DNA of 64,000 nt from positions 124,001 through 188,000 of IMG/VR virus record IMGVR_UViG_3300043399_000297. One strand, written 5' to 3'. A model generated the notes under the pieces. That model was not told where the DNA came from and did no database searches. It worked only from the letters and a program-made list of their open reading frames with translations. Positions 21,111-62,929 of the stretch are shown one piece after another (the first letter of the stretch is position 1; each line of letters begins with the position of its first letter). Both the position numbers and the translations under genes were made by a program.

Positions 21111-21190
21111 TAAATACTTTCAAGCTCAAGAGAGTTTATGCAGTCCCCGCTGCGTAGAGGCTAGAACCCTCTTATATAAGGAGAAAACAA
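21111..21190 (+). promoter_or_regulatory. late promoter plus structured 5' leader
   Basis: TAAATA at 21111-21116; stems AAGCTC/GAGTTT, TATGCAG/CTGCGTA and GAGG/CCTC precede the SD. Confidence 0.5.
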
Positions 21191-22459
21191 ATGGGACGCC
21201 CACTAAAGATTGCTAAAGCACAAGCAGTCATTACAATCACAAACACAACTAACTCAACTGATCTAGTTACAACTAATGCAAACTTCACTAATCTTGGTAT
21301 TATTGCAGGTATGCCGTTTGTAACTGCATCGAACATCGGCGGGCTTGTCGCCGGAACACTATATTGGATTCTTAAGGTAGTAAACTCAGGAAATAACAGC
21401 ACTTTCACTGTTTCTGAAACTCCGTTAAATGCTAATGTAAATAGCACACCCAAAGATTTGTCAACTGCATCAGGCACTGTTTCAACTACAGTTGGTCCAG
21501 TTGATGCGTATTTCAATAATCCAAACGGTCCTCAATGGCCAGCAACAAATGCCAATACTTACTCAGTAGTAGGCGGTAATACATCAATTTATGGCAAACA
21601 AGTACTTTGCAATGTTGCGCTAGGTCAAACAGGTTCAGGTGTAATCTATTCATACACTACGAGCCCTGTAATTGGTGGTCTAGGAACAGATTTTGCCAAC
21701 ACTAGCGGTACAGGCACTGTTATTCAGTATGTGCAAGCAAATGGTGTTCCAGCTACTCTTGGATATGTAAGCAGCAATGCTCAGCCAAACATTGAGATTT
21801 CAAATGCAACTGCAACTGGTAATTTCTTGACAACAGTAGGTAATGCATTAACTTTGAGTTTAAATCTTCCGGTTACTCTAACAGCCGATATCGGTGGTCT
21901 AACAGCAGGAACTACTTATTTCGTTAAAACAACTCCAAATGCAACTGCATTTTCAGTGTCATTAACGCCGGGCGGAGCTAATGTTGGATTAAGCAGCGAA
22001 GATGCAACTTCTTACGCAAATCAGGACTTGGTCACTTTCGCAGCTAACGCAGCAGCAGCTACTTCAGCCGCTGCTTATATCTTTGCAACACCAGAAGCAG
22101 GATATATTGTTCGTCAGAAGGGCAAGCAGAAGTATCTTGTTAAGGGAGCCACATCAGGTCTCGTTGGACAGTGCTACACTGCAAACGTTGCAAATACTGC
22201 AATGCTTCCAAACACTATGACTATCACTGCAACCTATGCCAACAGTGCAACAGTTAAGGTTCAGAGTTTGAGCGATCACACTGCTGAATTGTTCACTGCA
22301 ACATCAGGTGGACCTGCAACAAGCACTGACAACATTAACAATGCTGCCCCTGCTTTTGCAACGTTCAACACCGCTGTTGCTGCTAACTCGACTCAGTTGT
22401 ATGATTTCAGTTATGGCAACGCACAACCTTACCCGATCGTACAAATCGGCAACGCATAA
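21191..22459 (+). CDS. virion structural protein
   Basis: Late promoter, strong SD, two copies of a GG..AGT.Y(W/F)(I/V)...F.VS.T beta module. Confidence 0.7.
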   Translation: MGRPLKIAKAQAVITITNTTNSTDLVTTNANFTNLGIIAGMPFVTASNIGGLVAGTLYWILKVVNSGNNSTFTVSETPLNANVNSTPKDLSTASGTVSTTVGPVDAYFNNPNGPQWPATNANTYSVVGGNTSIYGKQVLCNVALGQTGSGVIYSYTTSPVIGGLGTDFANTSGTGTVIQYVQANGVPATLGYVSSNAQPNIEISNATATGNFLTTVGNALTLSLNLPVTLTADIGGLTAGTTYFVKTTPNATAFSVSLTPGGANVGLSSEDATSYANQDLVTFAANAAAATSAAAYIFATPEAGYIVRQKGKQKYLVKGATSGLVGQCYTANVANTAMLPNTMTITATYANSATVKVQSLSDHTAELFTATSGGPATSTDNINNAAPAFATFNTAVAANSTQLYDFSYGNAQPYPIVQIGNA

Positions 22460-28214: not shown

Positions 28215-29468
28215 ATGGCTCGTCGTGCAATCGTTACTAAGGTTCGCAAGCCCAAGAAGACCACAGTTCGTGTTGGTAAGAAGGGTGTTGCCCTCGCTTC
28301 GTCTGGTAATACACTTACGAAGGATTTTCGCCCTAAGGATAGTGATGTTCTGCGGTATGGTCCTGAACCCAGCTTCACTGACAGCCAGCCCATTGAGGAA
28401 CAGCGTCAGTCTATTCTTTCCGACGCATATAATTGGTATTCGCGTTTCTGCACTCACAAGGATTCCAAGCTGTTCCTAATTCAGTATCTTGAAGATACTA
28501 ATATGAGCAAGGATGTTGTCAAGTTAGTGCGTAAGGCCCCTGACAATCGTATGGTTACGACTGCTGGTTGGGCTGCTCGTTGCGCTACTCGTGGTCTTGT
28601 TCTGACCGAGAAGCAGAAGAATTATATTCAGGCTTGTGTTGATCGTCTAGTTGACTTTGCTAAGGCTGGTGTTAAGGACGAGCCTGCCGAAGGCGAAGAA
28701 ACTGTTGTTGAAAAGCCCAAGCGCACTGTCAACATTCAGGAAGTGATGCGTGAAAAGGCTGATGAAGCACTGAGTGATGTTGAAGCACTGTTTGATGAAT
28801 TCATCACTGCCGGTTGCCCCAAGGACTTTTCTGTAGACAAGAAGATCATTGGTTTTCTGACTAGCCGCAATGTTCTCCCCCAACACATTGCCAACGCTAT
28901 CAAGCGTTATACTAGCCTGCTTAACGAGTATAATGAAGCAGTTGCTGGTAACGATGACCAAGTCAAGGAAGCATATTCCAGCTATGGTAAGATGCAGTTG
29001 CGCTATACCGTCAAGTTTATTGAAGATATCATTGCAGAACTGAATGGTTATATCGGTCTTAAGCAGGCTACGAAGAAGGTTCGTGCTAAGAAGGTTGTTC
29101 CGGTTGAGAAGGTCGTGGCGAAGGTAAAGTTCCAAAAAACCAACGATGCACTTGGTATCACAAGTGTCAGTCCCGTCAAGCTGCATCAGTGCGCCGAGGC
29201 GTTCCTGTATGATACTGCTAAGCGCAAGATCATTTGGTTGGTTGCTGACGAGTATAGTAAGTGCTTGATTGTCAAGGGCAATGCAGTAATTGGGTTTGAC
29301 AAGAAAAAGAGTATGAGCAAGACTGTTAGGAAACCGGAAGAGTTCCTTAAGGGAATGATGAGCGCAAGTCGCCCGAACACTCGCAAGATGATTGACGATA
29401 TCAAGGCAGTTGCAGCGATCCCGAATGGTCGATTCAATGAGAATATTGTTATCCTTAAGGTTTGGTGA
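28215..29468 (+). CDS. hypothetical basic phage protein (417 aa)
   Basis: Strong SD, biased codon usage, C-terminal KTVRKPEE...NGRFNEN..ILK motif. Confidence 0.8.
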   Translation: MARRAIVTKVRKPKKTTVRVGKKGVALASSGNTLTKDFRPKDSDVLRYGPEPSFTDSQPIEEQRQSILSDAYNWYSRFCTHKDSKLFLIQYLEDTNMSKDVVKLVRKAPDNRMVTTAGWAARCATRGLVLTEKQKNYIQACVDRLVDFAKAGVKDEPAEGEETVVEKPKRTVNIQEVMREKADEALSDVEALFDEFITAGCPKDFSVDKKIIGFLTSRNVLPQHIANAIKRYTSLLNEYNEAVAGNDDQVKEAYSSYGKMQLRYTVKFIEDIIAELNGYIGLKQATKKVRAKKVVPVEKVVAKVKFQKTNDALGITSVSPVKLHQCAEAFLYDTAKRKIIWLVADEYSKCLIVKGNAVIGFDKKKSMSKTVRKPEEFLKGMMSASRPNTRKMIDDIKAVAAIPNGRFNENIVILKVW

Positions 29469-30072
29469 TCGTCTTGCACGAATCCCCGTGCCATCTGACG
29501 AAATTACCCTTGTTAACTGTCTTCCCGCAGTGTTCGCAAGTTAATTGATACTCTGGTTTGCACATTGGATTATTTTTCCCGGTCTTGTTAGCGTTTAGTG
29601 CCGACAGGGCCGGGTTTTTCTTCCCACGCATTGCACTCGGTTTCCCATACATTGGATTCTTCTCGCCTAAGTTTTCCGAGTTGCGTCTACTAAGTTCGGG
29701 GTTCTTGGTACCGAACATAGGATGTTTTTCTCCCTGGCGTTTTCTATTTCTCTCTGCTGTATCAGGGCGAGACTTCCCAAAACAAGGATGATTTACCCCT
29801 GCTTCGGAACCGCCTGTTTCCGGTATACGGTTGGCCCACTCATCGCTTTCTACAACGTTCCATAGTTCGGAATAATATACGCCCCAGGTTGTCAGTTCTT
29901 CTTTAGTTTGGCACTCTTTCAATATCACTGTAGTTACATCATTTCCGTGTTCAAGGATATGAGGTATCCAATCAATGCCGGAACCTTTATATTTGAATGG
30001 ATCTTTTTCTGTTTTACCTAGGTATTGTAGACCGGTTTTGTTGTGGGTCTTCTTATACAAATAAATAGTCAT
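29455..30072 (-). CDS. free-standing GIY-YIG-type (Seg-like) homing endonuclease with NUMOD3-like repeats and a C-terminal zinc knuckle
   Basis: IYLY...YLGKT..Y.GSG..W...WAN..PETG; NPMYGK/HPMFG repeats; CEHC...RWH...C. Confidence 0.8.
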   Translation of the reverse strand: MTIYLYKKTHNKTGLQYLGKTEKDPFKYKGSGIDWIPHILEHGNDVTTVILKECQTKEELTTWGVYYSELWNVVESDEWANRIPETGGSEAGVNHPCFGKSRPDTAERNRKRQGEKHPMFGTKNPELSRRNSENLGEKNPMYGKPSAMRGKKNPALSALNANKTGKNNPMCKPEYQLTCEHCGKTVNKGNFVRWHGDSCKTITKP

Positions 30073-30140
30073 TGCTGATACTCCGCTATAGTGTTAGAGT
30101 GGTTAGATGCGTCAACATCGTGAACCACACTTTTATTTAG
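30073..30140 (-). promoter_or_regulatory. late promoter plus conserved two-hairpin leader of an endonuclease gene, copy 1
   Basis: Homologous to 33040-33107 and 61575-61640, with compensatory base changes. Confidence 0.8.
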
Positions 30141-30204
30141 TCCTTTTTACTTGACTTAGAACCATTAATCTAATATATTAAACAAATCATCAAAAGGAGT
30201 TATC

Positions 30205-30645
30205 GTGGGAAACAATGTCAATTTAAGTGAGTATGCAAAGTTTGTGTTGGCTGTATGCAGTGAACCTAGCAAGAATCTTACTGCGTATATGGATCGGCTT
30301 GACGAATTAGATGCAAACTATGATCCGAAGCTTATGGGGTATGGTCCGGACATCAATGTTCCTTTGCTATTAACCGCAGCTTTGGGTTTGGGATCGGAAT
30401 CCGGAGAATTCCAAGAAATCGTAAAGAAGGTCTATTTCCAAGGAAAACCAATGACGGATGAAACCGTCCATCACGCCAAGCGTGAACTCGGGGACATTAT
30501 CTGGTATTGGGCTAACGCTTGTAATGCGCTTGGTCTTGATCCTGACGATGTTATTGCAGAGAATGTCAAGAAGCTTGAAGCACGATATCCGGGTGGCAAG
30601 TTTGATGTTCACTATTCAGAAAATAGAAAGGACGGAGACCTGTAA
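30205..30645 (+). CDS. mazG: MazG-like NTP pyrophosphohydrolase
   Basis: GLGSESGEFQEIVKK...ELGDIIWY...N..KL.ARY. Confidence 0.9.
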   Translation: MGNNVNLSEYAKFVLAVCSEPSKNLTAYMDRLDELDANYDPKLMGYGPDINVPLLLTAALGLGSESGEFQEIVKKVYFQGKPMTDETVHHAKRELGDIIWYWANACNALGLDPDDVIAENVKKLEARYPGGKFDVHYSENRKDGDL

Positions 30646-30854
30646 TGGGTCTCGGTCCAAGTGTCTGTGGTAGATGTAGGGTATTTTCTAATTACGTGCC
30701 CAATGTGATTCCTAATAAGCGGGGATATTGGGTATGCCCAGTATGTGACCTAGAAACACACGATAGTCTATTTGAATTTACAAGGGACGATCAGCTAGTT
30801 ATAGAAATCAATACACAAATTATTAGAGAGAATAGAGGTCAGAGCGTTTCCTGA
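30645..30854 (+). CDS. small zinc-ribbon protein
   Basis: CGRC...CPVC. Confidence 0.55.
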   Translation: MGLGPSVCGRCRVFSNYVPNVIPNKRGYWVCPVCDLETHDSLFEFTRDDQLVIEINTQIIRENRGQSVS

Positions 30855-30879
30855 TAAATAAGATTAATAGGAAACAACT

Positions 30880-31665
30880 ATGGCAGCAGACCTTTTAGCA
30901 ACACCAAACAATTATGATCTTCAAGAATACAAGAATGCTCTCTTTGAAAATCTACGCCTGCGTTTAGGCGGAGATATCATTGATCTTGAGTTGGATCCGC
31001 AGCACTATGAAGCTGCCTACAACTATGCTATCAAACTATACAGGCAAAGAGCGCAGAACGCAACGATTGAAAGCTATACGCTTTTTATGGTTGAAAAGAA
31101 CGTATATGAGTATACGCTTCCGGAAGAATTCATCAACGTAAGATGCTTGTATCGTAGAACGGTGGGCTTGGAAACAGGTCCATCGTCCACTGCGTTTGAT
31201 CCATTCTCAAGTGCAATTCTCAACACCTATCTACTCAACTACAACTACACGGGCGGCCTTGCTACATACGACTTCTACGCTGGATATGTAGAGCTTACAG
31301 CACGTATGTTCGGTGGCTATCTCAATTATACATTCAACCCAGTAACCAAACTCTTGAAGATCGTGAGAGACTTTAAGGGCACAGGAGAGCGTGTTTTGAT
31401 TTGGGCTGACGTTCAGCGTCCTGAGTTAGAATTGTTGCAAGACCCGGGTGCCGGTGTATGGATCGGTGACTATATTCTTGCTATTCTAAAAGGGATCATT
31501 GGCGAAGCCCGTGAAAAGTTTCAGTCAATCGCCGGACCTGGTGGAGGCACATCATTAAATGGTTCTGCAATGAAGGCTGAAAGTAAGGCCGATCAGGAAC
31601 GGTTAATTATGGAACTTAAGGCTTATGTGGACTTTTCACAACCCCTGACATGGATACAGGGCTAA
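30880..31665 (+). CDS. neck / head-tail adaptor protein (T4 gp13-like)
   Basis: LRLG..IIDLELD, GEAREKF...GG.SLNG; late box at 30855. Confidence 0.85.
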   Translation: MAADLLATPNNYDLQEYKNALFENLRLRLGGDIIDLELDPQHYEAAYNYAIKLYRQRAQNATIESYTLFMVEKNVYEYTLPEEFINVRCLYRRTVGLETGPSSTAFDPFSSAILNTYLLNYNYTGGLATYDFYAGYVELTARMFGGYLNYTFNPVTKLLKIVRDFKGTGERVLIWADVQRPELELLQDPGAGVWIGDYILAILKGIIGEAREKFQSIAGPGGGTSLNGSAMKAESKADQERLIMELKAYVDFSQPLTWIQG

Positions 31666-31711
31666 ATTAACTTGGATTCACGGATGAGGACTACTATCGG
31701 GCAACACAAGG

Positions 31712-31740
31712 TTGACATTTTTAAAGAAATGTAATATCAT
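31712..31740 (+). promoter_or_regulatory. sigma70-type promoter TTGACA-N17-TATCAT, leaderless into ATG 31747
   Basis: ATG 6 nt after the -10; no SD. Confidence 0.7.
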
Positions 31741-31746
31741 ATAAGA

Positions 31747-32397
31747 ATGACAAATAAAATTATCTCCATCTCCGGATTGATAGGATCAGGAAAAGACACC
31801 GCCGCCGACTATCTCTGCACGGTACATGGTTTCAAGCGTATGAGCTTTGGTGCCAGTCTCAAGGACGCAGTAGCAGTCATTTTTAATTGGAATCGCGAAC
31901 TACTAGAAGGGTCAACTAAGACTAGCCGAGAATGGCGAGAAGAAGTTGACACTTGGTGGGCAGATCGTTTAGGCATTCCCAATCTAACTCCTCGTTGGGT
32001 ACTACAGCAATGGGGAACAGAAGTTGCTCGTAAGGGTTTCCATGATGAAATCTGGGTTGCGAGTGTAGAGAACAAACTTCTCAACAATAAAGATGATATC
32101 GTAATCACTGATTGTAGATTCCCCAACGAACTTACTGCTATCAAGAACGCAGGTGGTATCACAATGCGAACTCATAGAGGCAAGGCTCCCAATTGGTTAG
32201 ATATCGCTGCAATTATAAACACTACTACGGACGAAGCCGTAAAGATTCACTGTCTAGAGCAAATTGAAAAGTTCAACGTTCATGCTAGCGAGTATTCTAG
32301 CGTTGGTCTAGCGTATGATTATCATCTAGACAACAATAAGACGGTAACAGAATTGCACGAACAAATTGAGAGTATTTTACGCCAATCTACAATTTGA
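31747..32397 (+). CDS. deoxynucleoside monophosphate kinase (T4 gp1-like)
   Basis: GLIGSGKDT P-loop, TPRWVLQQWGTE, ITDCRFPNE, HASE. Confidence 0.92.
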   Translation: MTNKIISISGLIGSGKDTAADYLCTVHGFKRMSFGASLKDAVAVIFNWNRELLEGSTKTSREWREEVDTWWADRLGIPNLTPRWVLQQWGTEVARKGFHDEIWVASVENKLLNNKDDIVITDCRFPNELTAIKNAGGITMRTHRGKAPNWLDIAAIINTTTDEAVKIHCLEQIEKFNVHASEYSSVGLAYDYHLDNNKTVTELHEQIESILRQSTI

Positions 32398-33039
32398 ATT
32401 ATGCCAACGATTGAAGTTGCCCATGCCCGCTACTTTCTTATGACAGTGCGGGCATTCAAATACCGGGTCCTTTTTACCATACCTAACACTCTTTTCACCC
32501 AATTGTGAATTTCTTCTTTTCTCGTTTGATTCGGGAGTTTGAGTTTTTCCAAACATATGGTTATCAGGGCCTAATTGACAGGTCTTCATCCTAGCACTTT
32601 GATCTGGTCTTTTTCTACCAGTGAGTTTTTTACTATGCTCGGGTCTTTTTCTACCTATTTTAGGTAAGGCAGCTTTTCTCTTGTGTTCTTCTGTGTGTTT
32701 TCTACCGGCTTGTGCAATTCTAAGTTTTTCTTTAGTTTTTGCTGATCTGGGAACGCCAACCTTCCCACCAACTCCCCCGCCGGTTTCTGGAATTTTATTA
32801 GCCCATTCTGTGCTGTCTGCAACACTCCATAGCTTGCTGTAATATCTGCCCCAGTAGTTTAATTCTTCGTTGGATTGGCATTCCTTGAGGATTTCAGTAG
32901 TTACATCACACCCGTGTTCTTTGATATGCGGTACCCAATCTGTACCAGAACCCATATACTTATACGGGTCTTGGATAGTTTTTCCGAGATACTTGAATCC
33001 GGTTTTGTTGTGGGTTTTCTTGTACAAATAAATAGTCAT
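32377..33039 (-). CDS. free-standing GIY-YIG-type (Seg-like) homing endonuclease with NUMOD3-like repeats and a zinc knuckle; paralogue of 29455-30072
   Basis: MTIYLYKKTHNKTG..YLGKT N-terminus nearly identical to copy 1; CPHC...RWH..C. Confidence 0.8.
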   Translation of the reverse strand: MTIYLYKKTHNKTGFKYLGKTIQDPYKYMGSGTDWVPHIKEHGCDVTTEILKECQSNEELNYWGRYYSKLWSVADSTEWANKIPETGGGVGGKVGVPRSAKTKEKLRIAQAGRKHTEEHKRKAALPKIGRKRPEHSKKLTGRKRPDQSARMKTCQLGPDNHMFGKTQTPESNEKRRNSQLGEKSVRYGKKDPVFECPHCHKKVAGMGNFNRWHNSNCRLA

Positions 33040-33107
33040 AGCTGATACTCCTTGACAGTATTAGAGTAGTTGGGGATTGCCGTCCCGCGAACTACATCTT
33101 TATTTAT
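33040..33107 (-). promoter_or_regulatory. late promoter plus conserved two-hairpin leader, copy 2
   Basis: See copy 1; the TAAATA overlaps the stop of the 33100-33456 gene. Confidence 0.8.
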
Positions 33108-33456
33108 GCCAATCTACGAGCAAATCTCCGCGCTTCCAAGTTATCTCTTTGCGCTTCACTACCTCAACGCAATTGAGACAAATTGACCTAAGGTTAGTTA
33201 GATTGACATTAGTTAAGTCTCCGTCTATGTGGAATACAAGCATTTGCGTTGGGTAAGACGCTTTGAATCCGCAACATTCACATATTGTCTTTTTTTTGTA
33301 TCCAGCCTTCTCCCATATATAAAGTTGTGGCTTTTTCTTGGCCCTTTTCTTTCCGCAACTATCACATATACTGCGATAGTAGGTTTTGCCATTGCGGATG
33401 TAATTTATTGCGCAATAGTTCTTATTACATTCCTTGCATATGGGTCTTTTCAACAT
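33100..33456 (-). CDS. zinc-binding HNH-like protein
   Basis: Several CxxC pairs plus FHIDGDLTNVNLTNLRSICLNC. Confidence 0.7.
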   Translation of the reverse strand: MLKRPICKECNKNYCAINYIRNGKTYYRSICDSCGKKRAKKKPQLYIWEKAGYKKKTICECCGFKASYPTQMLVFHIDGDLTNVNLTNLRSICLNCVEVVKRKEITWKRGDLLVDWHK

Positions 33457-33519
33457 AACACTATTTAGTCATTTTCACCTTTAAAGGTTCCGTTAACCAC
33501 ACTTTTTTATGTTTTTTGC

Positions 33520-33595
33520 TAAATATCTCTAGAACCTTAGTAATCGTTACTAGGGCAGGTGGTAAACCTCATAATCATACGAAGGAAAAAATAAT
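33520..33595 (+). promoter_or_regulatory. late promoter plus two-hairpin leader of the tail sheath gene
   Basis: TAAATA 33520-33525; stems CCTTAGTAA/TTACTAGGG and AGGT/ACCT. Confidence 0.5.
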
Positions 33596-59990: not shown

Positions 59991-60914
59991 GTGAAGAATC
60001 GGTTGTGGGTTGAGAAATATCGCCCATCTAAAATAGATGATTATGTGTTTGTTGACGATAGACAAAAGAACACAGTTGAGCAGTGGATCAAAGACGAGTC
60101 TATTCCCCATCTATTGCTTTCAGGCGATCCCGGCACAGGTAAAACTACATTAGCTAAGGTTCTTATCAATGAACTTAATGTAGAAGACTTTGACGTTCTA
60201 GAAATCAATGCTAGTAGAGAAAATGGCATTGACAACCTTAGAGAAAAAATCAATGGCTTTGTGCAGACTATGCCTTTCGGCAAGTTCAAGGTTGTTTTGT
60301 TAGACGAAGCTGACTATCTTACTCAGCCAGCACAGGCAGCATTGCGTAATGATATGGAAGCATATCACGAAACAGTCAGATACATTTTAACTTGTAACTA
60401 TCAGCACAAAATTATTCCTGCGTTGAAAAGTCGTTGTCACGAATTCCATATCGCAAAGCCCGATATCACGGAATACACAACTCGTGCCGCTACTGTTCTT
60501 ATAAACGAAAACATTGAGTTTGATCTAGATGACCTTGACACATATGTTCGTGCCTGTTATCCCGATCTAAGAAAGTGTTTGAATCAGTTACAGCAGAATA
60601 GCATCACTGGTTCTCTTGCCAAGCCACAGTCAACTGGTAGTGGCGAAGATGAACTATTGGTCGCTGCTACAGAATTGTTCAAGAGTGGTAAGATTCTTGA
60701 AGGTCGTCAGCAATTGTTACAATATATCAGTCTATATCCAACTCGGGTAGAAGATGTGGTAAGATGGGCATATGACAATCTTGATCTTTGGGGTAAGACT
60801 CAAGAGAGCAAAGATGCTTCAATTGTGATCATTCGCAATACGTTAGCAAACCTGCCCTTAGTAGGGATACCTGAAATAAGCATTGCGGCCATGATGGTTG
60901 AATTATGTAGCTAA
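59991..60914 (+). CDS. clamp-loader large subunit (T4 gp44 / RFC-like AAA+)
   Basis: [30 protein letters not shown]. Confidence 0.95.
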
Positions 60915-61574
60915 TTCCCAACCCTTGACTGATTTGTAATATTTTGTGCGGTTGACCAAATTATAAATATTACTGGCTGAGGCACTGATGTAATTACAGA
61001 AATCGTATTTTGTCATGGTAACTACTTCTTGAGTTTCTTTGTTTCTAAATGAATATAAAGTGTGATCATATTGGTGGTTACCGGCACCTGTTCTATTTCT
61101 ACTTCTAGTCGCTCGTACTTCCGGAGAACTCATACGCTTCTTAAACGCCTCACGACTTTTTTGGCTTTTTGCAGGGTGTCTTTCACCCAAAGACAGCATT
61201 CTCTCGGATTGCAGTGTTCGGTATTTTTCTAATTTGTTGTGACTGTTCTCGCCTGATATTCTTAGAATATGCTCTTCGGTATGCTTATATCCGCTACATC
61301 CGTCTCCACCGTCGGTGAGATTTCGTAGTATGCCGGTGTCATTATCTACTCTACCGTACCATCGTATCATCCGTCTTTCTAACGCAAACGCTCCGGTTTC
61401 GGTGAGATTTTGTTCAAGAAATACAATTCTTGAAAGGTCATCTGGAACCTTAAGTTTTCCGTGATTAGCAAACGCTCGGTTCCCGTTGCCTTTTCCTATG
61501 TAATAAGGGGTTCCTGCTTTAGCTGTAGTTGAGTCATTTTTTCGTAGATATGCGTAGACATAATAAATATTCAT
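60903..61574 (-). CDS. free-standing GIY-YIG-type homing endonuclease (different clade from the other two)
   Basis: YYVYAYLR...PYYIGKG.GNRA...E...I..YGR...[10 protein letters not shown]; helical repeats; KGW C-terminal DNA-binding motif. Confidence 0.8.
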
Positions 61575-61640
61575 GCTGATTCTCCTTAACAGAATTAGAG
61601 TGAGTAGGAATGCCAGTTCCGTGACTCACAACTATTTATA
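61575..61640 (-). promoter_or_regulatory. late promoter (TATAAATA) plus conserved two-hairpin leader, copy 3
   Basis: See copy 1. Confidence 0.8.
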
Positions 61641-61991: not shown

Positions 61992-62765
61992 TTATGAATA
62001 CATATTCAATATGTGTTCAATAATTTCGTGACGCCTAATATCCTTATTAGTAAATTCACAAGATACCATACCTGGCACACGATACTCTATAATTTTAGAT
62101 TTCAAATCTAATAATCCGTTGTCGGGAGTTTTTCTGTCGGTTTGTTCAACGTCGCCAGTAATGACAATCTTACTGCCCTCACCAATTCTTGTCATTAGCA
62201 TTTTCATCTGACTAGGCGTTGCATTCTGGGCTTCATCCAGAATAATCCAACTGTGCTTAAAGTTACGGCCTCTGCAAAAGGCTAGTGGGGTTATTTCAAT
62301 AACTTGTTCATCTATCATATACTCCAATTCTTTAGTTGAGTAAAACTCTTTCAAAACATCAAACAATGGTCTGACCCACGGTTCCATCTTTGAGTTCAAG
62401 TCGCCGGGTAAGAACCCGTGCTTTTCATCATCAACAGCAACCGCGGGTCTTGTTAGTAGAATCTTGTCACACTGACCACTACGCATAGCTTGAATTGCTG
62501 CAAGCATTGCAAGATATGTTTTACCAGTTCCCGCAGGGCCACTCACCACGACTATATCTGTGTCAGGGTCAGTTAATGCGATTATATATTTTTCCTGATT
62601 TACCGATTGCGGTATTAGTTCGATGGACTTTTTGGTCCTCTTGGGACTGGCTTGATTGAAGTCAATTGTCTTTGATTCATTACTATAGAAAGGTTTACTT
62701 TCATAATCTTTTTTCTGTGTGTATCGTGTGTCTTTTCTTAGTGCGCTTGTTTTTCTCTTTGTCAA
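61992..62765 (-). CDS. phoH: PhoH-like ATPase (likely TTG start at 62765)
   Basis: GPAGTGKT, LTRP, GFLPG, RGRNF, ILDEAQN, TGD..Q.D; AGGAGA SD before the TTG. Confidence 0.93.
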   Translation of the reverse strand: MTKRKTSALRKDTRYTQKKDYESKPFYSNESKTIDFNQASPKRTKKSIELIPQSVNQEKYIIALTDPDTDIVVVSGPAGTGKTYLAMLAAIQAMRSGQCDKILLTRPAVAVDDEKHGFLPGDLNSKMEPWVRPLFDVLKEFYSTKELEYMIDEQVIEITPLAFCRGRNFKHSWIILDEAQNATPSQMKMLMTRIGEGSKIVITGDVEQTDRKTPDNGLLDLKSKIIEYRVPGMVSCEFTNKDIRRHEIIEHILNMYS

Positions 62766-62929
62766 GTATGGTCTCCTGATACCGTTTGAAAGCATTTGCT
62801 CTCAAACTTACTTAGATAGGGGATAATGAGTAAACTATGAGTATGTGAAAAATAGTTTCCTATGATAAATATAAAGCTTATTGCTAAAGTTGTTTCCTTC
62901 TTATTATAGCTGGAGAGATAAATACATAT

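Follow-up and report, generated by a model that had tools for sequence, protein, structure and literature searches.

What kind of control element precedes the homing-endonuclease genes of an uncultured freshwater giant phage, and on which of the two DNA strands does it act? The question arose from a 64,000-nt stretch (hereafter the window; bases 124001-188000 of the 244,022-bp IMG/VR virus record IMGVR_UViG_3300043399_000297), in which the initial annotation described a conserved, covarying two-hairpin element upstream of three GIY-YIG endonuclease genes, at 30073-30140, 33040-33107 and 61575-61640. It was read there on the gene strand, as a portable structured-RNA (or ssDNA) module that could be a translational operator or switch, a protein-binding site or a mobility signal. 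The observation was confirmed: all three copies read on the minus strand exactly as described, ending at the ATGs at 30072, 33039 and 61574, and their alignment showed the same geometry throughout. The interpretation was only partly supported, as the element was found to fold best on the strand opposite the gene and to lie between two facing promoter-like boxes. The features of the three copies are as follows.

30134-30140, minus strand: copy 1, gene-strand promoter-like box CTAAATA, 5 nt before hairpin 1; its complement forms part of the U-rich tail on the plus strand.
30099-30128, no strand assigned: copy 1, hairpin 1, made of a 6-bp stem, a lone pair between two bulges, a 4-bp stem and a 6-nt loop, predicted to fold best on the plus strand.
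30075-30097, no strand assigned: copy 1, hairpin 2; on the gene strand a weak stem with two A·C mismatches, with GGAG at 30081-30084 half in the loop and half in the top of the stem; on the plus strand a perfect 8-bp stem with two G·U pairs and an anti-Shine-Dalgarno loop.
30061-30067, plus strand: copy 1, inverted ATAAATA box formed by the last base of codon 2 plus codons 3-4 (ACT ATT TAT) of the endonuclease, the predicted promoter of the antisense RNA.
30073-30140, plus strand: copy 1, predicted cis-antisense RNA of about 65-70 nt, with inferred ends.
29455-30072, minus strand: copy 1, free-standing GIY-YIG-type homing endonuclease gene (205 aa) with a NUMOD3 motif and a C-terminal Cys/His motif.
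33101-33107, minus strand: copy 2, gene-strand box ATAAATA, overlapping the stop codon of the upstream HNH-like ORF at 33100-33456.
33042-33095, no strand assigned: copy 2, hairpin 2 (33042-33064), a 1-nt linker and hairpin 1 (33066-33095).
33028-33034, plus strand: copy 2, inverted ATAAATA box inside codons 2-4.
32377-33039, minus strand: copy 2, GIY-YIG-type homing endonuclease gene (220 aa), matching the PHROG homing endonuclease family phrog_314.
61633-61640, minus strand: copy 3, gene-strand box TATAAATA, 3 nt before hairpin 1.
61576-61629, no strand assigned: copy 3, hairpin 2 (61576-61598), a 1-nt linker and hairpin 1 (61600-61629).
61563-61569, plus strand: copy 3, inverted ATAAATA box inside codons 2-4 (AAT ATT TAT).
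60903-61574, minus strand: copy 3, endonuclease gene (223 aa) of a second GIY-YIG subfamily, with the motifs YVYAY and YYIGKG.

The three proteins have GIY-YIG-like N-termini (IYLYKK...YLGKT and VYAY...YYIGKG). No family of Rfam 15 matched the element, as the initial annotation had supposed: at gathering thresholds the only match in the whole window was freshwater-2, located elsewhere, and a permissive scan of 29900-33300 on both strands at E up to 10 gave only two chance-level matches away from the element, which excluded the ribozyme classes common in phages (pistol, hatchet, twister-sister). Megablast of the 4.1-kb region and blastn with two copies of the element against GenBank phages found nothing relevant, and no cultured phage was found to carry the element. 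The nearest cultured relatives by tail sheath are jumbo phages such as Pseudomonas PA5oct and Sinorhizobium Phosso, at about 47% identity; a search of the PA5oct literature for a promoter precedent gave no useful result.

To determine how widespread the element is, a covariance model (R1) was built from the three copies with the structure given in the initial annotation. It recovered these copies at E about 1e-24 and identified four further copies in the same record, so that the genome holds seven copies, all on the minus strand, rather than three. Three of the four new copies precede HNH_3 endonuclease genes and the fourth precedes a broken GIY-YIG-like gene. A scan of IMG/VR with a degenerate DNA pattern matched at least 118 stretches; all 80 loci returned, on 80 other viral contigs, contained a model match, 94 matches in all. 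As a control, the same pattern gave 102 matches in 596 Gb of bacterial and archaeal genomes, of which only 7 of the 80 loci returned passed the model, most of them short contigs from freshwater MAGs. The element is therefore phage-specific and far above chance. A second model (R2) found 13, 8, 2, 5 and 12 copies in five large viral records of 139-525 kb. In total the module occurs at more than 130 sites in uncultured freshwater giant phages, the present one and over a hundred relatives; the sample studied here is itself a freshwater metagenome.

The covariation claimed initially from three copies held in the larger set. On 87 distinct sequences, 93% of cells formed standard pairs and 14 of 18 pairs showed changes on both sides, including ten of the 11 pairs of hairpin 1. 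The covariation score was 0.503, against 0.146 for shuffles (0 of 500 reached the observed value) and about 0.05 for controls in which the 3' partner was slid by 1-3 columns. Most sequences came from a pattern that fixed the blocks GCTGAT, A..RTTAGAG and CGYGA, and the near-invariance of these blocks is therefore partly by construction, although the 32 further sequences found by the model alone kept them with few exceptions. None of the paired positions of hairpin 1 was fixed by the pattern, only the short TCRCG block on its 5' side. As viral contigs from many samples may be related, counts are also given per distinct sequence and per distinct haplotype. The structure is real. A pseudoknot between loop 1 (YUGG) and UCAG of stem 2 was considered, but copy 2 and others do not support it.

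The distribution of non-canonical pairs changed the interpretation of the structure. On the gene strand, the cells that were not Watson-Crick were almost all A·C or C·A (105 cells, 42 of them in hairpin 1, against 3 G·U). In the 32 sequences found by the model alone the counts were 31 against 1, and among 80 distinct helix-1 haplotypes 41 carried an A·C and 4 a G·U. An A·C on one strand is a G·U wobble on the other, and counted on the opposite strand pairing rose from 93.0% to 99.6% of cells. Base composition was rejected as the cause, as with the genome's base frequencies A·C and G·U are expected about equally on the gene strand (0.120 against 0.117). The 8-position stem that holds the Shine-Dalgarno has two near-invariant A·C mismatches on the gene strand, a correction to the original description; these become G·U and U·G on the opposite strand, giving a perfect 8-bp helix. 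The consensus fold averaged -14.7 kcal/mol on the opposite strand and -7.6 kcal/mol on the gene strand, with the opposite strand better in 87 of 87 sequences. On one and the same 67-sequence alignment, RNAalifold gave -19.66 against -13.70 kcal/mol, predicting exactly the two hairpins on the opposite strand but only a 3-bp remnant of stem 2 on the gene strand. The plus-strand copies of the window folded into the two hairpins as the minimum-free-energy structure (z = -1.7, -1.9 and -2.2 for copies 1, 2 and 3), whereas on the gene strand z ran from -0.6 to -1.2 and the folds were mixed. Taken alone, the Shine-Dalgarno hairpin averaged -5.6 kcal/mol on the opposite strand and is thermodynamically marginal on the mRNA, with a mean of -2.3 kcal/mol and 49 of 113 sequences at -2 kcal/mol or weaker. 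The assumption that the gene strand is the folding strand is thus not supported.

The structure is flanked by two inverted boxes, of which only the outer one had been noticed initially. On the gene strand, TAAATA was conserved in 80-88 of 94 sequences immediately upstream of the structure, 5 nt before the first G of hairpin 1 in 86 of 120 sequences and 3-4 nt before it in 23; the 3-nt spacing class, to which copy 3 belongs, has 16 members. With the box 3-5 nt upstream of hairpin 1 in 109 of 120 sequences, the whole structure is in the predicted transcript, as the initial annotation had stated. On the opposite strand, positions 6-12 after the start codon read T ATT TAT in about half of the sequences, with close variants in most of the rest; the third base of codon 2 was T in 88 of 95 sequences, while its first two bases varied. 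Overall, TATTTA or TACTTA followed stem 2 at 5-7 nt in 114 of 119 sequences (at exactly 6 nt in 78) and in all three reading frames relative to the start codon (92, 16 and 6 sequences), for example ATG NNT ATT TAT, ATG TAT TTA and ATG TTA TTT ATA; a family of HNH proteins starts ATG TAT TTA, ATG TTA TTT ATA or ATG ATA TTT ATC. Only 3 of 212 other ORFs of the genome had such a hexamer in the same position. The constraint is therefore on the nucleotides and is anchored to the structure, not to the protein, and read on the opposite strand the hexamer is ATAAATA. This was the most enriched 7-mer within 60 nt upstream of ORFs in the genome (32 observed against 2.1 expected), and 37 of its 52 plus-strand occurrences lay in the 8% of the genome that is intergenic, with the start codon following within roughly 10-40 nt in most of them, making it this phage's promoter-like box, of the T4 late type. 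In T4, transcription starts about 6 nt after the box; under that rule both predicted RNAs would begin at the base of a hairpin. A search of the genome with Sigma70_r2 for a factor that might read the box found no match, which is uninformative because T4 gp55-like factors are very divergent and the record is about 71% complete.

The spacer after the gene-strand box is A-rich (AAAGT), while the spacers after the other boxes of the genome are C/T-rich. On the opposite strand, hairpin 1 is therefore followed by ACUUUUAUUUAU, with 6.8 U in 12 nt on average; the tail of the predicted antisense RNA reads ACUUUUAUUUA(U/G). The hairpin averages -10 kcal/mol on this strand, but as its stem has two bulges and the U run is interrupted, this is a modest terminator-like signal, and a simple terminator or promoter scanner did not flag the element, because of the bulges. 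In many loci the next phage gene starts within 20-50 nt of the tail, with no room for its own promoter, and termination therefore cannot be efficient everywhere.

The initial view of a portable, covarying structured module shared by endonuclease cassettes was supported, but restriction of the element to GIY-YIG genes was not. The downstream ORFs fall into about 12 N-terminal clusters, which include two large GIY-YIG groups, classical GIY-YIG (PF01541), HNH (PF01844, PF13392) and a DUF7487/TnsA-like protein, all in free-standing endonuclease genes, and most carry NUMOD3 motifs. In several groups the M-x-I-Y of the module is an N-terminal prefix ahead of the true catalytic motif. One further HNH gene of the genome has no hairpins, only two inverted boxes 9 nt apart. 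The endonuclease gene was opposite to both neighbours in 51 of 69 cases; in this genome about 90% of ORFs are on the plus strand and all seven cassettes are on the minus strand. Insertion boundaries could be inferred from empty sites, in which relatives have the genes for a 417-aa protein (p417) and MazG 12 nt apart with no promoter between them. The filled sites (this genome and a second filled site, L261) carry the reversed endonuclease gene, the element, a sigma-70-like promoter (TTGACT-17-TATATT or TATGAT) and a new Shine-Dalgarno for MazG. On that strand TTGAC followed the element within 10-70 nt in 29 of 121 loci, against 5 for the control word, and the full TTGAC-N17-19-TAnnnT pattern in 22, at variable distance; it is not a constant part of the module.

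The model that accounts for all of these features, which we hold only tentatively, is that the element is the overlap region of a convergent promoter pair carried by free-standing homing-endonuclease cassettes. In this view, the gene-strand late-type box (N)TAAATA would start the endonuclease mRNA at the base of hairpin 1, and the inner box would start a cis-antisense RNA of about 65 nt consisting of a perfect 8-bp hairpin whose 7-nt loop carries the complement of the Shine-Dalgarno, a 1-nt linker, and an 11-pair hairpin with two conserved bulged G residues, followed by the terminator-like tail. This RNA would be fully complementary to the mRNA leader from its 5' end through the ribosome-binding site to the start codon, and would hold endonuclease synthesis down, possibly by blocking of the ribosome-binding site, cleavage of the duplex or interference between the two facing polymerases. 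The analysis itself establishes the structure, its covariation and strand bias, the two boxes with their fixed spacing and the status of ATAAATA as the promoter-like motif of this phage, whereas firing of both boxes, the existence and ends of the RNAs and the regulatory effect are inferred from sequence alone; the sequencing runs that contain the sequence are DNA runs, with no RNA run among them. That the opposite-strand function belongs to the cassette itself is argued by the 13 cassettes pointing the same way as both neighbours, all of which keep the box and which show 4 A·C and 0 G·U. Weighing against the model are the modest terminator, the next genes starting close to the tail, and the fact that both predicted promoters are of the same class, which leaves any timing difference between the two RNAs unexplained. 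The near-invariant blocks (gene strand CTCTAA, ATCAGC and TCRCG) are likewise not explained by base pairing alone.

The main rival, which we consider unlikely though not exclusive of the first model, is that the opposite-strand structure serves as an insulator for the neighbouring phage genes. As the cassette is usually inserted backwards, the hairpin plus U tail would stop or process transcripts that have read antisense through the endonuclease gene, and the inner box, sometimes with a co-inserted sigma-70-type promoter, would restart transcription of the next phage gene, with the hairpins acting as a protective 5' end; this would be a late-promoter analogue of the PeSL cassettes of T4-like phages, composite stem-loop plus promoter motifs associated with indels (PMC4122927). 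The prevailing orientation, the TTGAC excess and the comparison of empty and filled sites support part of this view, as does the closeness of neighbouring genes to the tail, because it shows that termination cannot be complete. However, the box and the A·C bias persist in the 13 cassettes in which there is no phage gene to serve on that strand, the sigma-70-like promoter is present in only about a quarter of loci, and a plain terminator or stabiliser does not explain the conserved bulges, the anti-Shine-Dalgarno loop, or why the Shine-Dalgarno and start codon of the endonuclease are built into the structure at fixed geometry.

Somewhat less likely still is the reading of the initial annotation, in which the structure acts on the endonuclease mRNA itself, hairpin 1 being a 5'-terminal stabiliser or protein-binding operator and hairpin 2 partly hiding the Shine-Dalgarno to give constitutive low translation or a switch. 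The whole structure does lie between the gene-strand box and the ATG at fixed geometry in every copy, half of GGAG pairs in the top of stem 2 and those pairs covary, and RNA hairpins at ribosome-binding sites are the known way in which T4 endonucleases are held down (PMC2988022). This reading remains possible for hairpin 1, which is reasonably stable on the gene strand (mean -8.7 kcal/mol) and would sit at the predicted 5' end of the mRNA, but it is contradicted for the Shine-Dalgarno hairpin by the wobble statistics and the weakness of stem 2, and it does not explain the inverted box conserved in three reading frames; a translational operator on the mRNA is not excluded, but is the weaker reading. 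A DNA-level signal, either a protein-binding site or a recombination or mobility signal used when the cassette is copied, is very unlikely. It would fit the near-invariant blocks, the inverted-repeat arrangement of the boxes at fixed spacing and the operator through which I-TevI represses its own late promoter (PMC2988022), and G·T is also the best-tolerated mismatch in single-stranded DNA. However, a duplex-DNA site would conserve sequence rather than covary to keep pairing, a common self-operator is unlikely for at least three unrelated nuclease classes, and the boxes equal the genome's own promoter-like motif.

A further possibility, unlikely on present evidence, is that the module is a self-contained, portable antisense-RNA control unit that is fused to at least three unrelated nuclease classes and forces an M-x-I-Y (or M-Y-L) N-terminus on them, because the antisense promoter is written into the coding sequence. 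The half of the predicted RNA that covers the Shine-Dalgarno and start codon is nearly identical among copies, and the 7-13 predicted antisense RNAs in one genome could therefore act in trans on every copy, giving genome-wide copy-number control of selfish endonucleases analogous to multicopy inhibition in IS10.

Homing endonucleases are the commonest selfish genes of large phages, and how they are kept harmless is known only for a handful of T4 genes. A conserved antisense-RNA module shared by GIY-YIG, HNH and other endonuclease cassettes would be a new, general way of restraining them, and a new RNA family for Rfam. The inner box offers a clear example of a predicted promoter overlapping a coding sequence and dictating the first residues of unrelated proteins, and the comparison of A·C with G·U pairs shows how reading a structure only on the gene strand can mislead. 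In practice, the module is a sensitive marker for finding free-standing endonuclease cassettes and their insertion boundaries in metagenomic phage genomes.

Among known systems, the I-TevI, segB and Aeh1 mobE genes (PMC2988022) are also phage homing-endonuclease genes with a TATAAATA-type box and an RNA structure at the ribosome-binding site, with the general aim of keeping endonuclease levels low. In T4, however, the hairpin is very stable, the late promoter lies inside it so that late transcripts escape, and the genes point the same way as their neighbours, except segD, whereas here the box is upstream of the whole structure, the mRNA hairpin is weak and cannot by itself act like the stable T4 hairpins, and 74% of cassettes are opposite to both neighbours; the difference from I-TevI noted in the initial annotation is therefore supported. 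The CfrI RNA of cyanophage S-PM2 (Millard et al. 2010, as summarised in PMC2984593) is an antisense RNA of a T4-like phage that overlaps a homing-endonuclease gene, but it is about 225 nt, runs antisense to the endonuclease gene and psbA, and has no described conserved two-hairpin fold or inverted box pair; no sequence or Rfam relationship to the element was found. In the RNA-IN/RNA-OUT system of IS10/Tn10, a mobile element limits its own transposase through a small cis-antisense RNA made from a facing promoter, a stable stem-loop that covers the 5' end, ribosome-binding site and start codon of the mRNA, with an overlap of a few tens of nucleotides. The predicted opposite-strand RNA resembles RNA-OUT in being a stable fold that covers the ribosome-binding site and start codon, but its expression is inferred, it has two hairpins, its carrier is a phage homing-endonuclease cassette and not an insertion sequence, both boxes are of the phage late type, and the putative antisense promoter is written into codons 2-4. 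The PeSL and PmSL cassettes of T4-like phages (PMC4122927, PMC2839356) are likewise short composite stem-loop plus promoter motifs, repeated many times per genome and associated with insertions and deletions of accessory genes. PeSLs, however, consist of a terminator followed by a sigma-70-like early (or Mot) promoter, are conserved in sequence and lie between ORFs, whereas the present module uses late-type boxes on both strands, covaries in its stems, and contains the ribosome-binding site and first codons of an endonuclease gene.

Directly upstream of copy 2 lies a Cys-rich HNH-like ORF of 118 amino acids (window 33100-33456, minus strand), the stop codon of which falls inside the box of copy 2. 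Upstream of this ORF, at about 33495-33520 on the minus strand, we identified a fragment resembling the first half of the module (ATAAAAAAGTGTGGTTAACGGAACC), followed by ACTAAATA only 5 nt before the ATG, which may represent a decayed module. Outside the window, the fifth copy of the module in the phage record (G000:C1:207293-208006; loci L005 and L294) precedes an ORF that stops after 30 codons, while a 205-amino acid ORF with a NUMOD3 motif continues in another frame; this is a frameshifted or decaying endonuclease gene. Modules followed by ORFs of 4-49 amino acids were also found at other loci (L026, L080, L079 and L011). An eighth free-standing gene of the HNH plus NUMOD3 type (G000:C1:195621-196270, outside the window; locus L293) has no hairpins. 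Its upstream region reads TATAAATA, aagctgagg, TATTTATG, that is, two inverted boxes 9 nt apart with the inner one overlapping the start codon, and it is either a minimal or a collapsed version of the module.

Comparison of window 29455-30300 with the corresponding loci of relatives revealed a presence/absence polymorphism of the copy 1 cassette between the gene encoding a 417-amino acid protein and MazG, the site being empty in L264, L277, L279, L281 and L285 and filled in L261. The insertion replaced the last codons of the upstream gene and brought a sigma-70-like promoter (TTGACT-17-TATATT, window 30151-30179) as well as a new ribosome-binding site with a GTG start for MazG. The phage carries PhoH (window 61992-62795, minus strand), MazG (window 30205-30645, plus strand) and a short-chain dehydrogenase that is FabG-like (G000:C1:62922-63656, minus strand), of which PhoH and the dehydrogenase are among the few non-endonuclease genes on the minus strand. 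Among the contigs from cellular genomes that pass the covariance model, by far the longest was L156, a contig of 148 417 bp in a Haliscomenobacter sp. MAG, that is, a MAG of the Bacteroidota; this could be a mis-binned phage genome or a hint about the host.

The GIY-YIG and HNH endonucleases of this genome share a C-terminal motif, CxHCGK...GNFxRWHGDxCK, which looks like a zinc finger and was seen in the C-termini of ORFs 29455-30072 and 32377-33039 and of the HNH genes at loci L004, L006 and L007. They also share NUMOD3 repeats. These shared features suggest that nuclease heads have been swapped onto a common DNA-binding tail. Elsewhere in the window, just at the start of a 422-amino acid ORF (21191-22459) that has no PHROG match, ends a region (21117-21193, plus strand) that matched the Rfam family freshwater-2 RNA (RF02980) at 63.2 bits, above its gathering score of 49.9.
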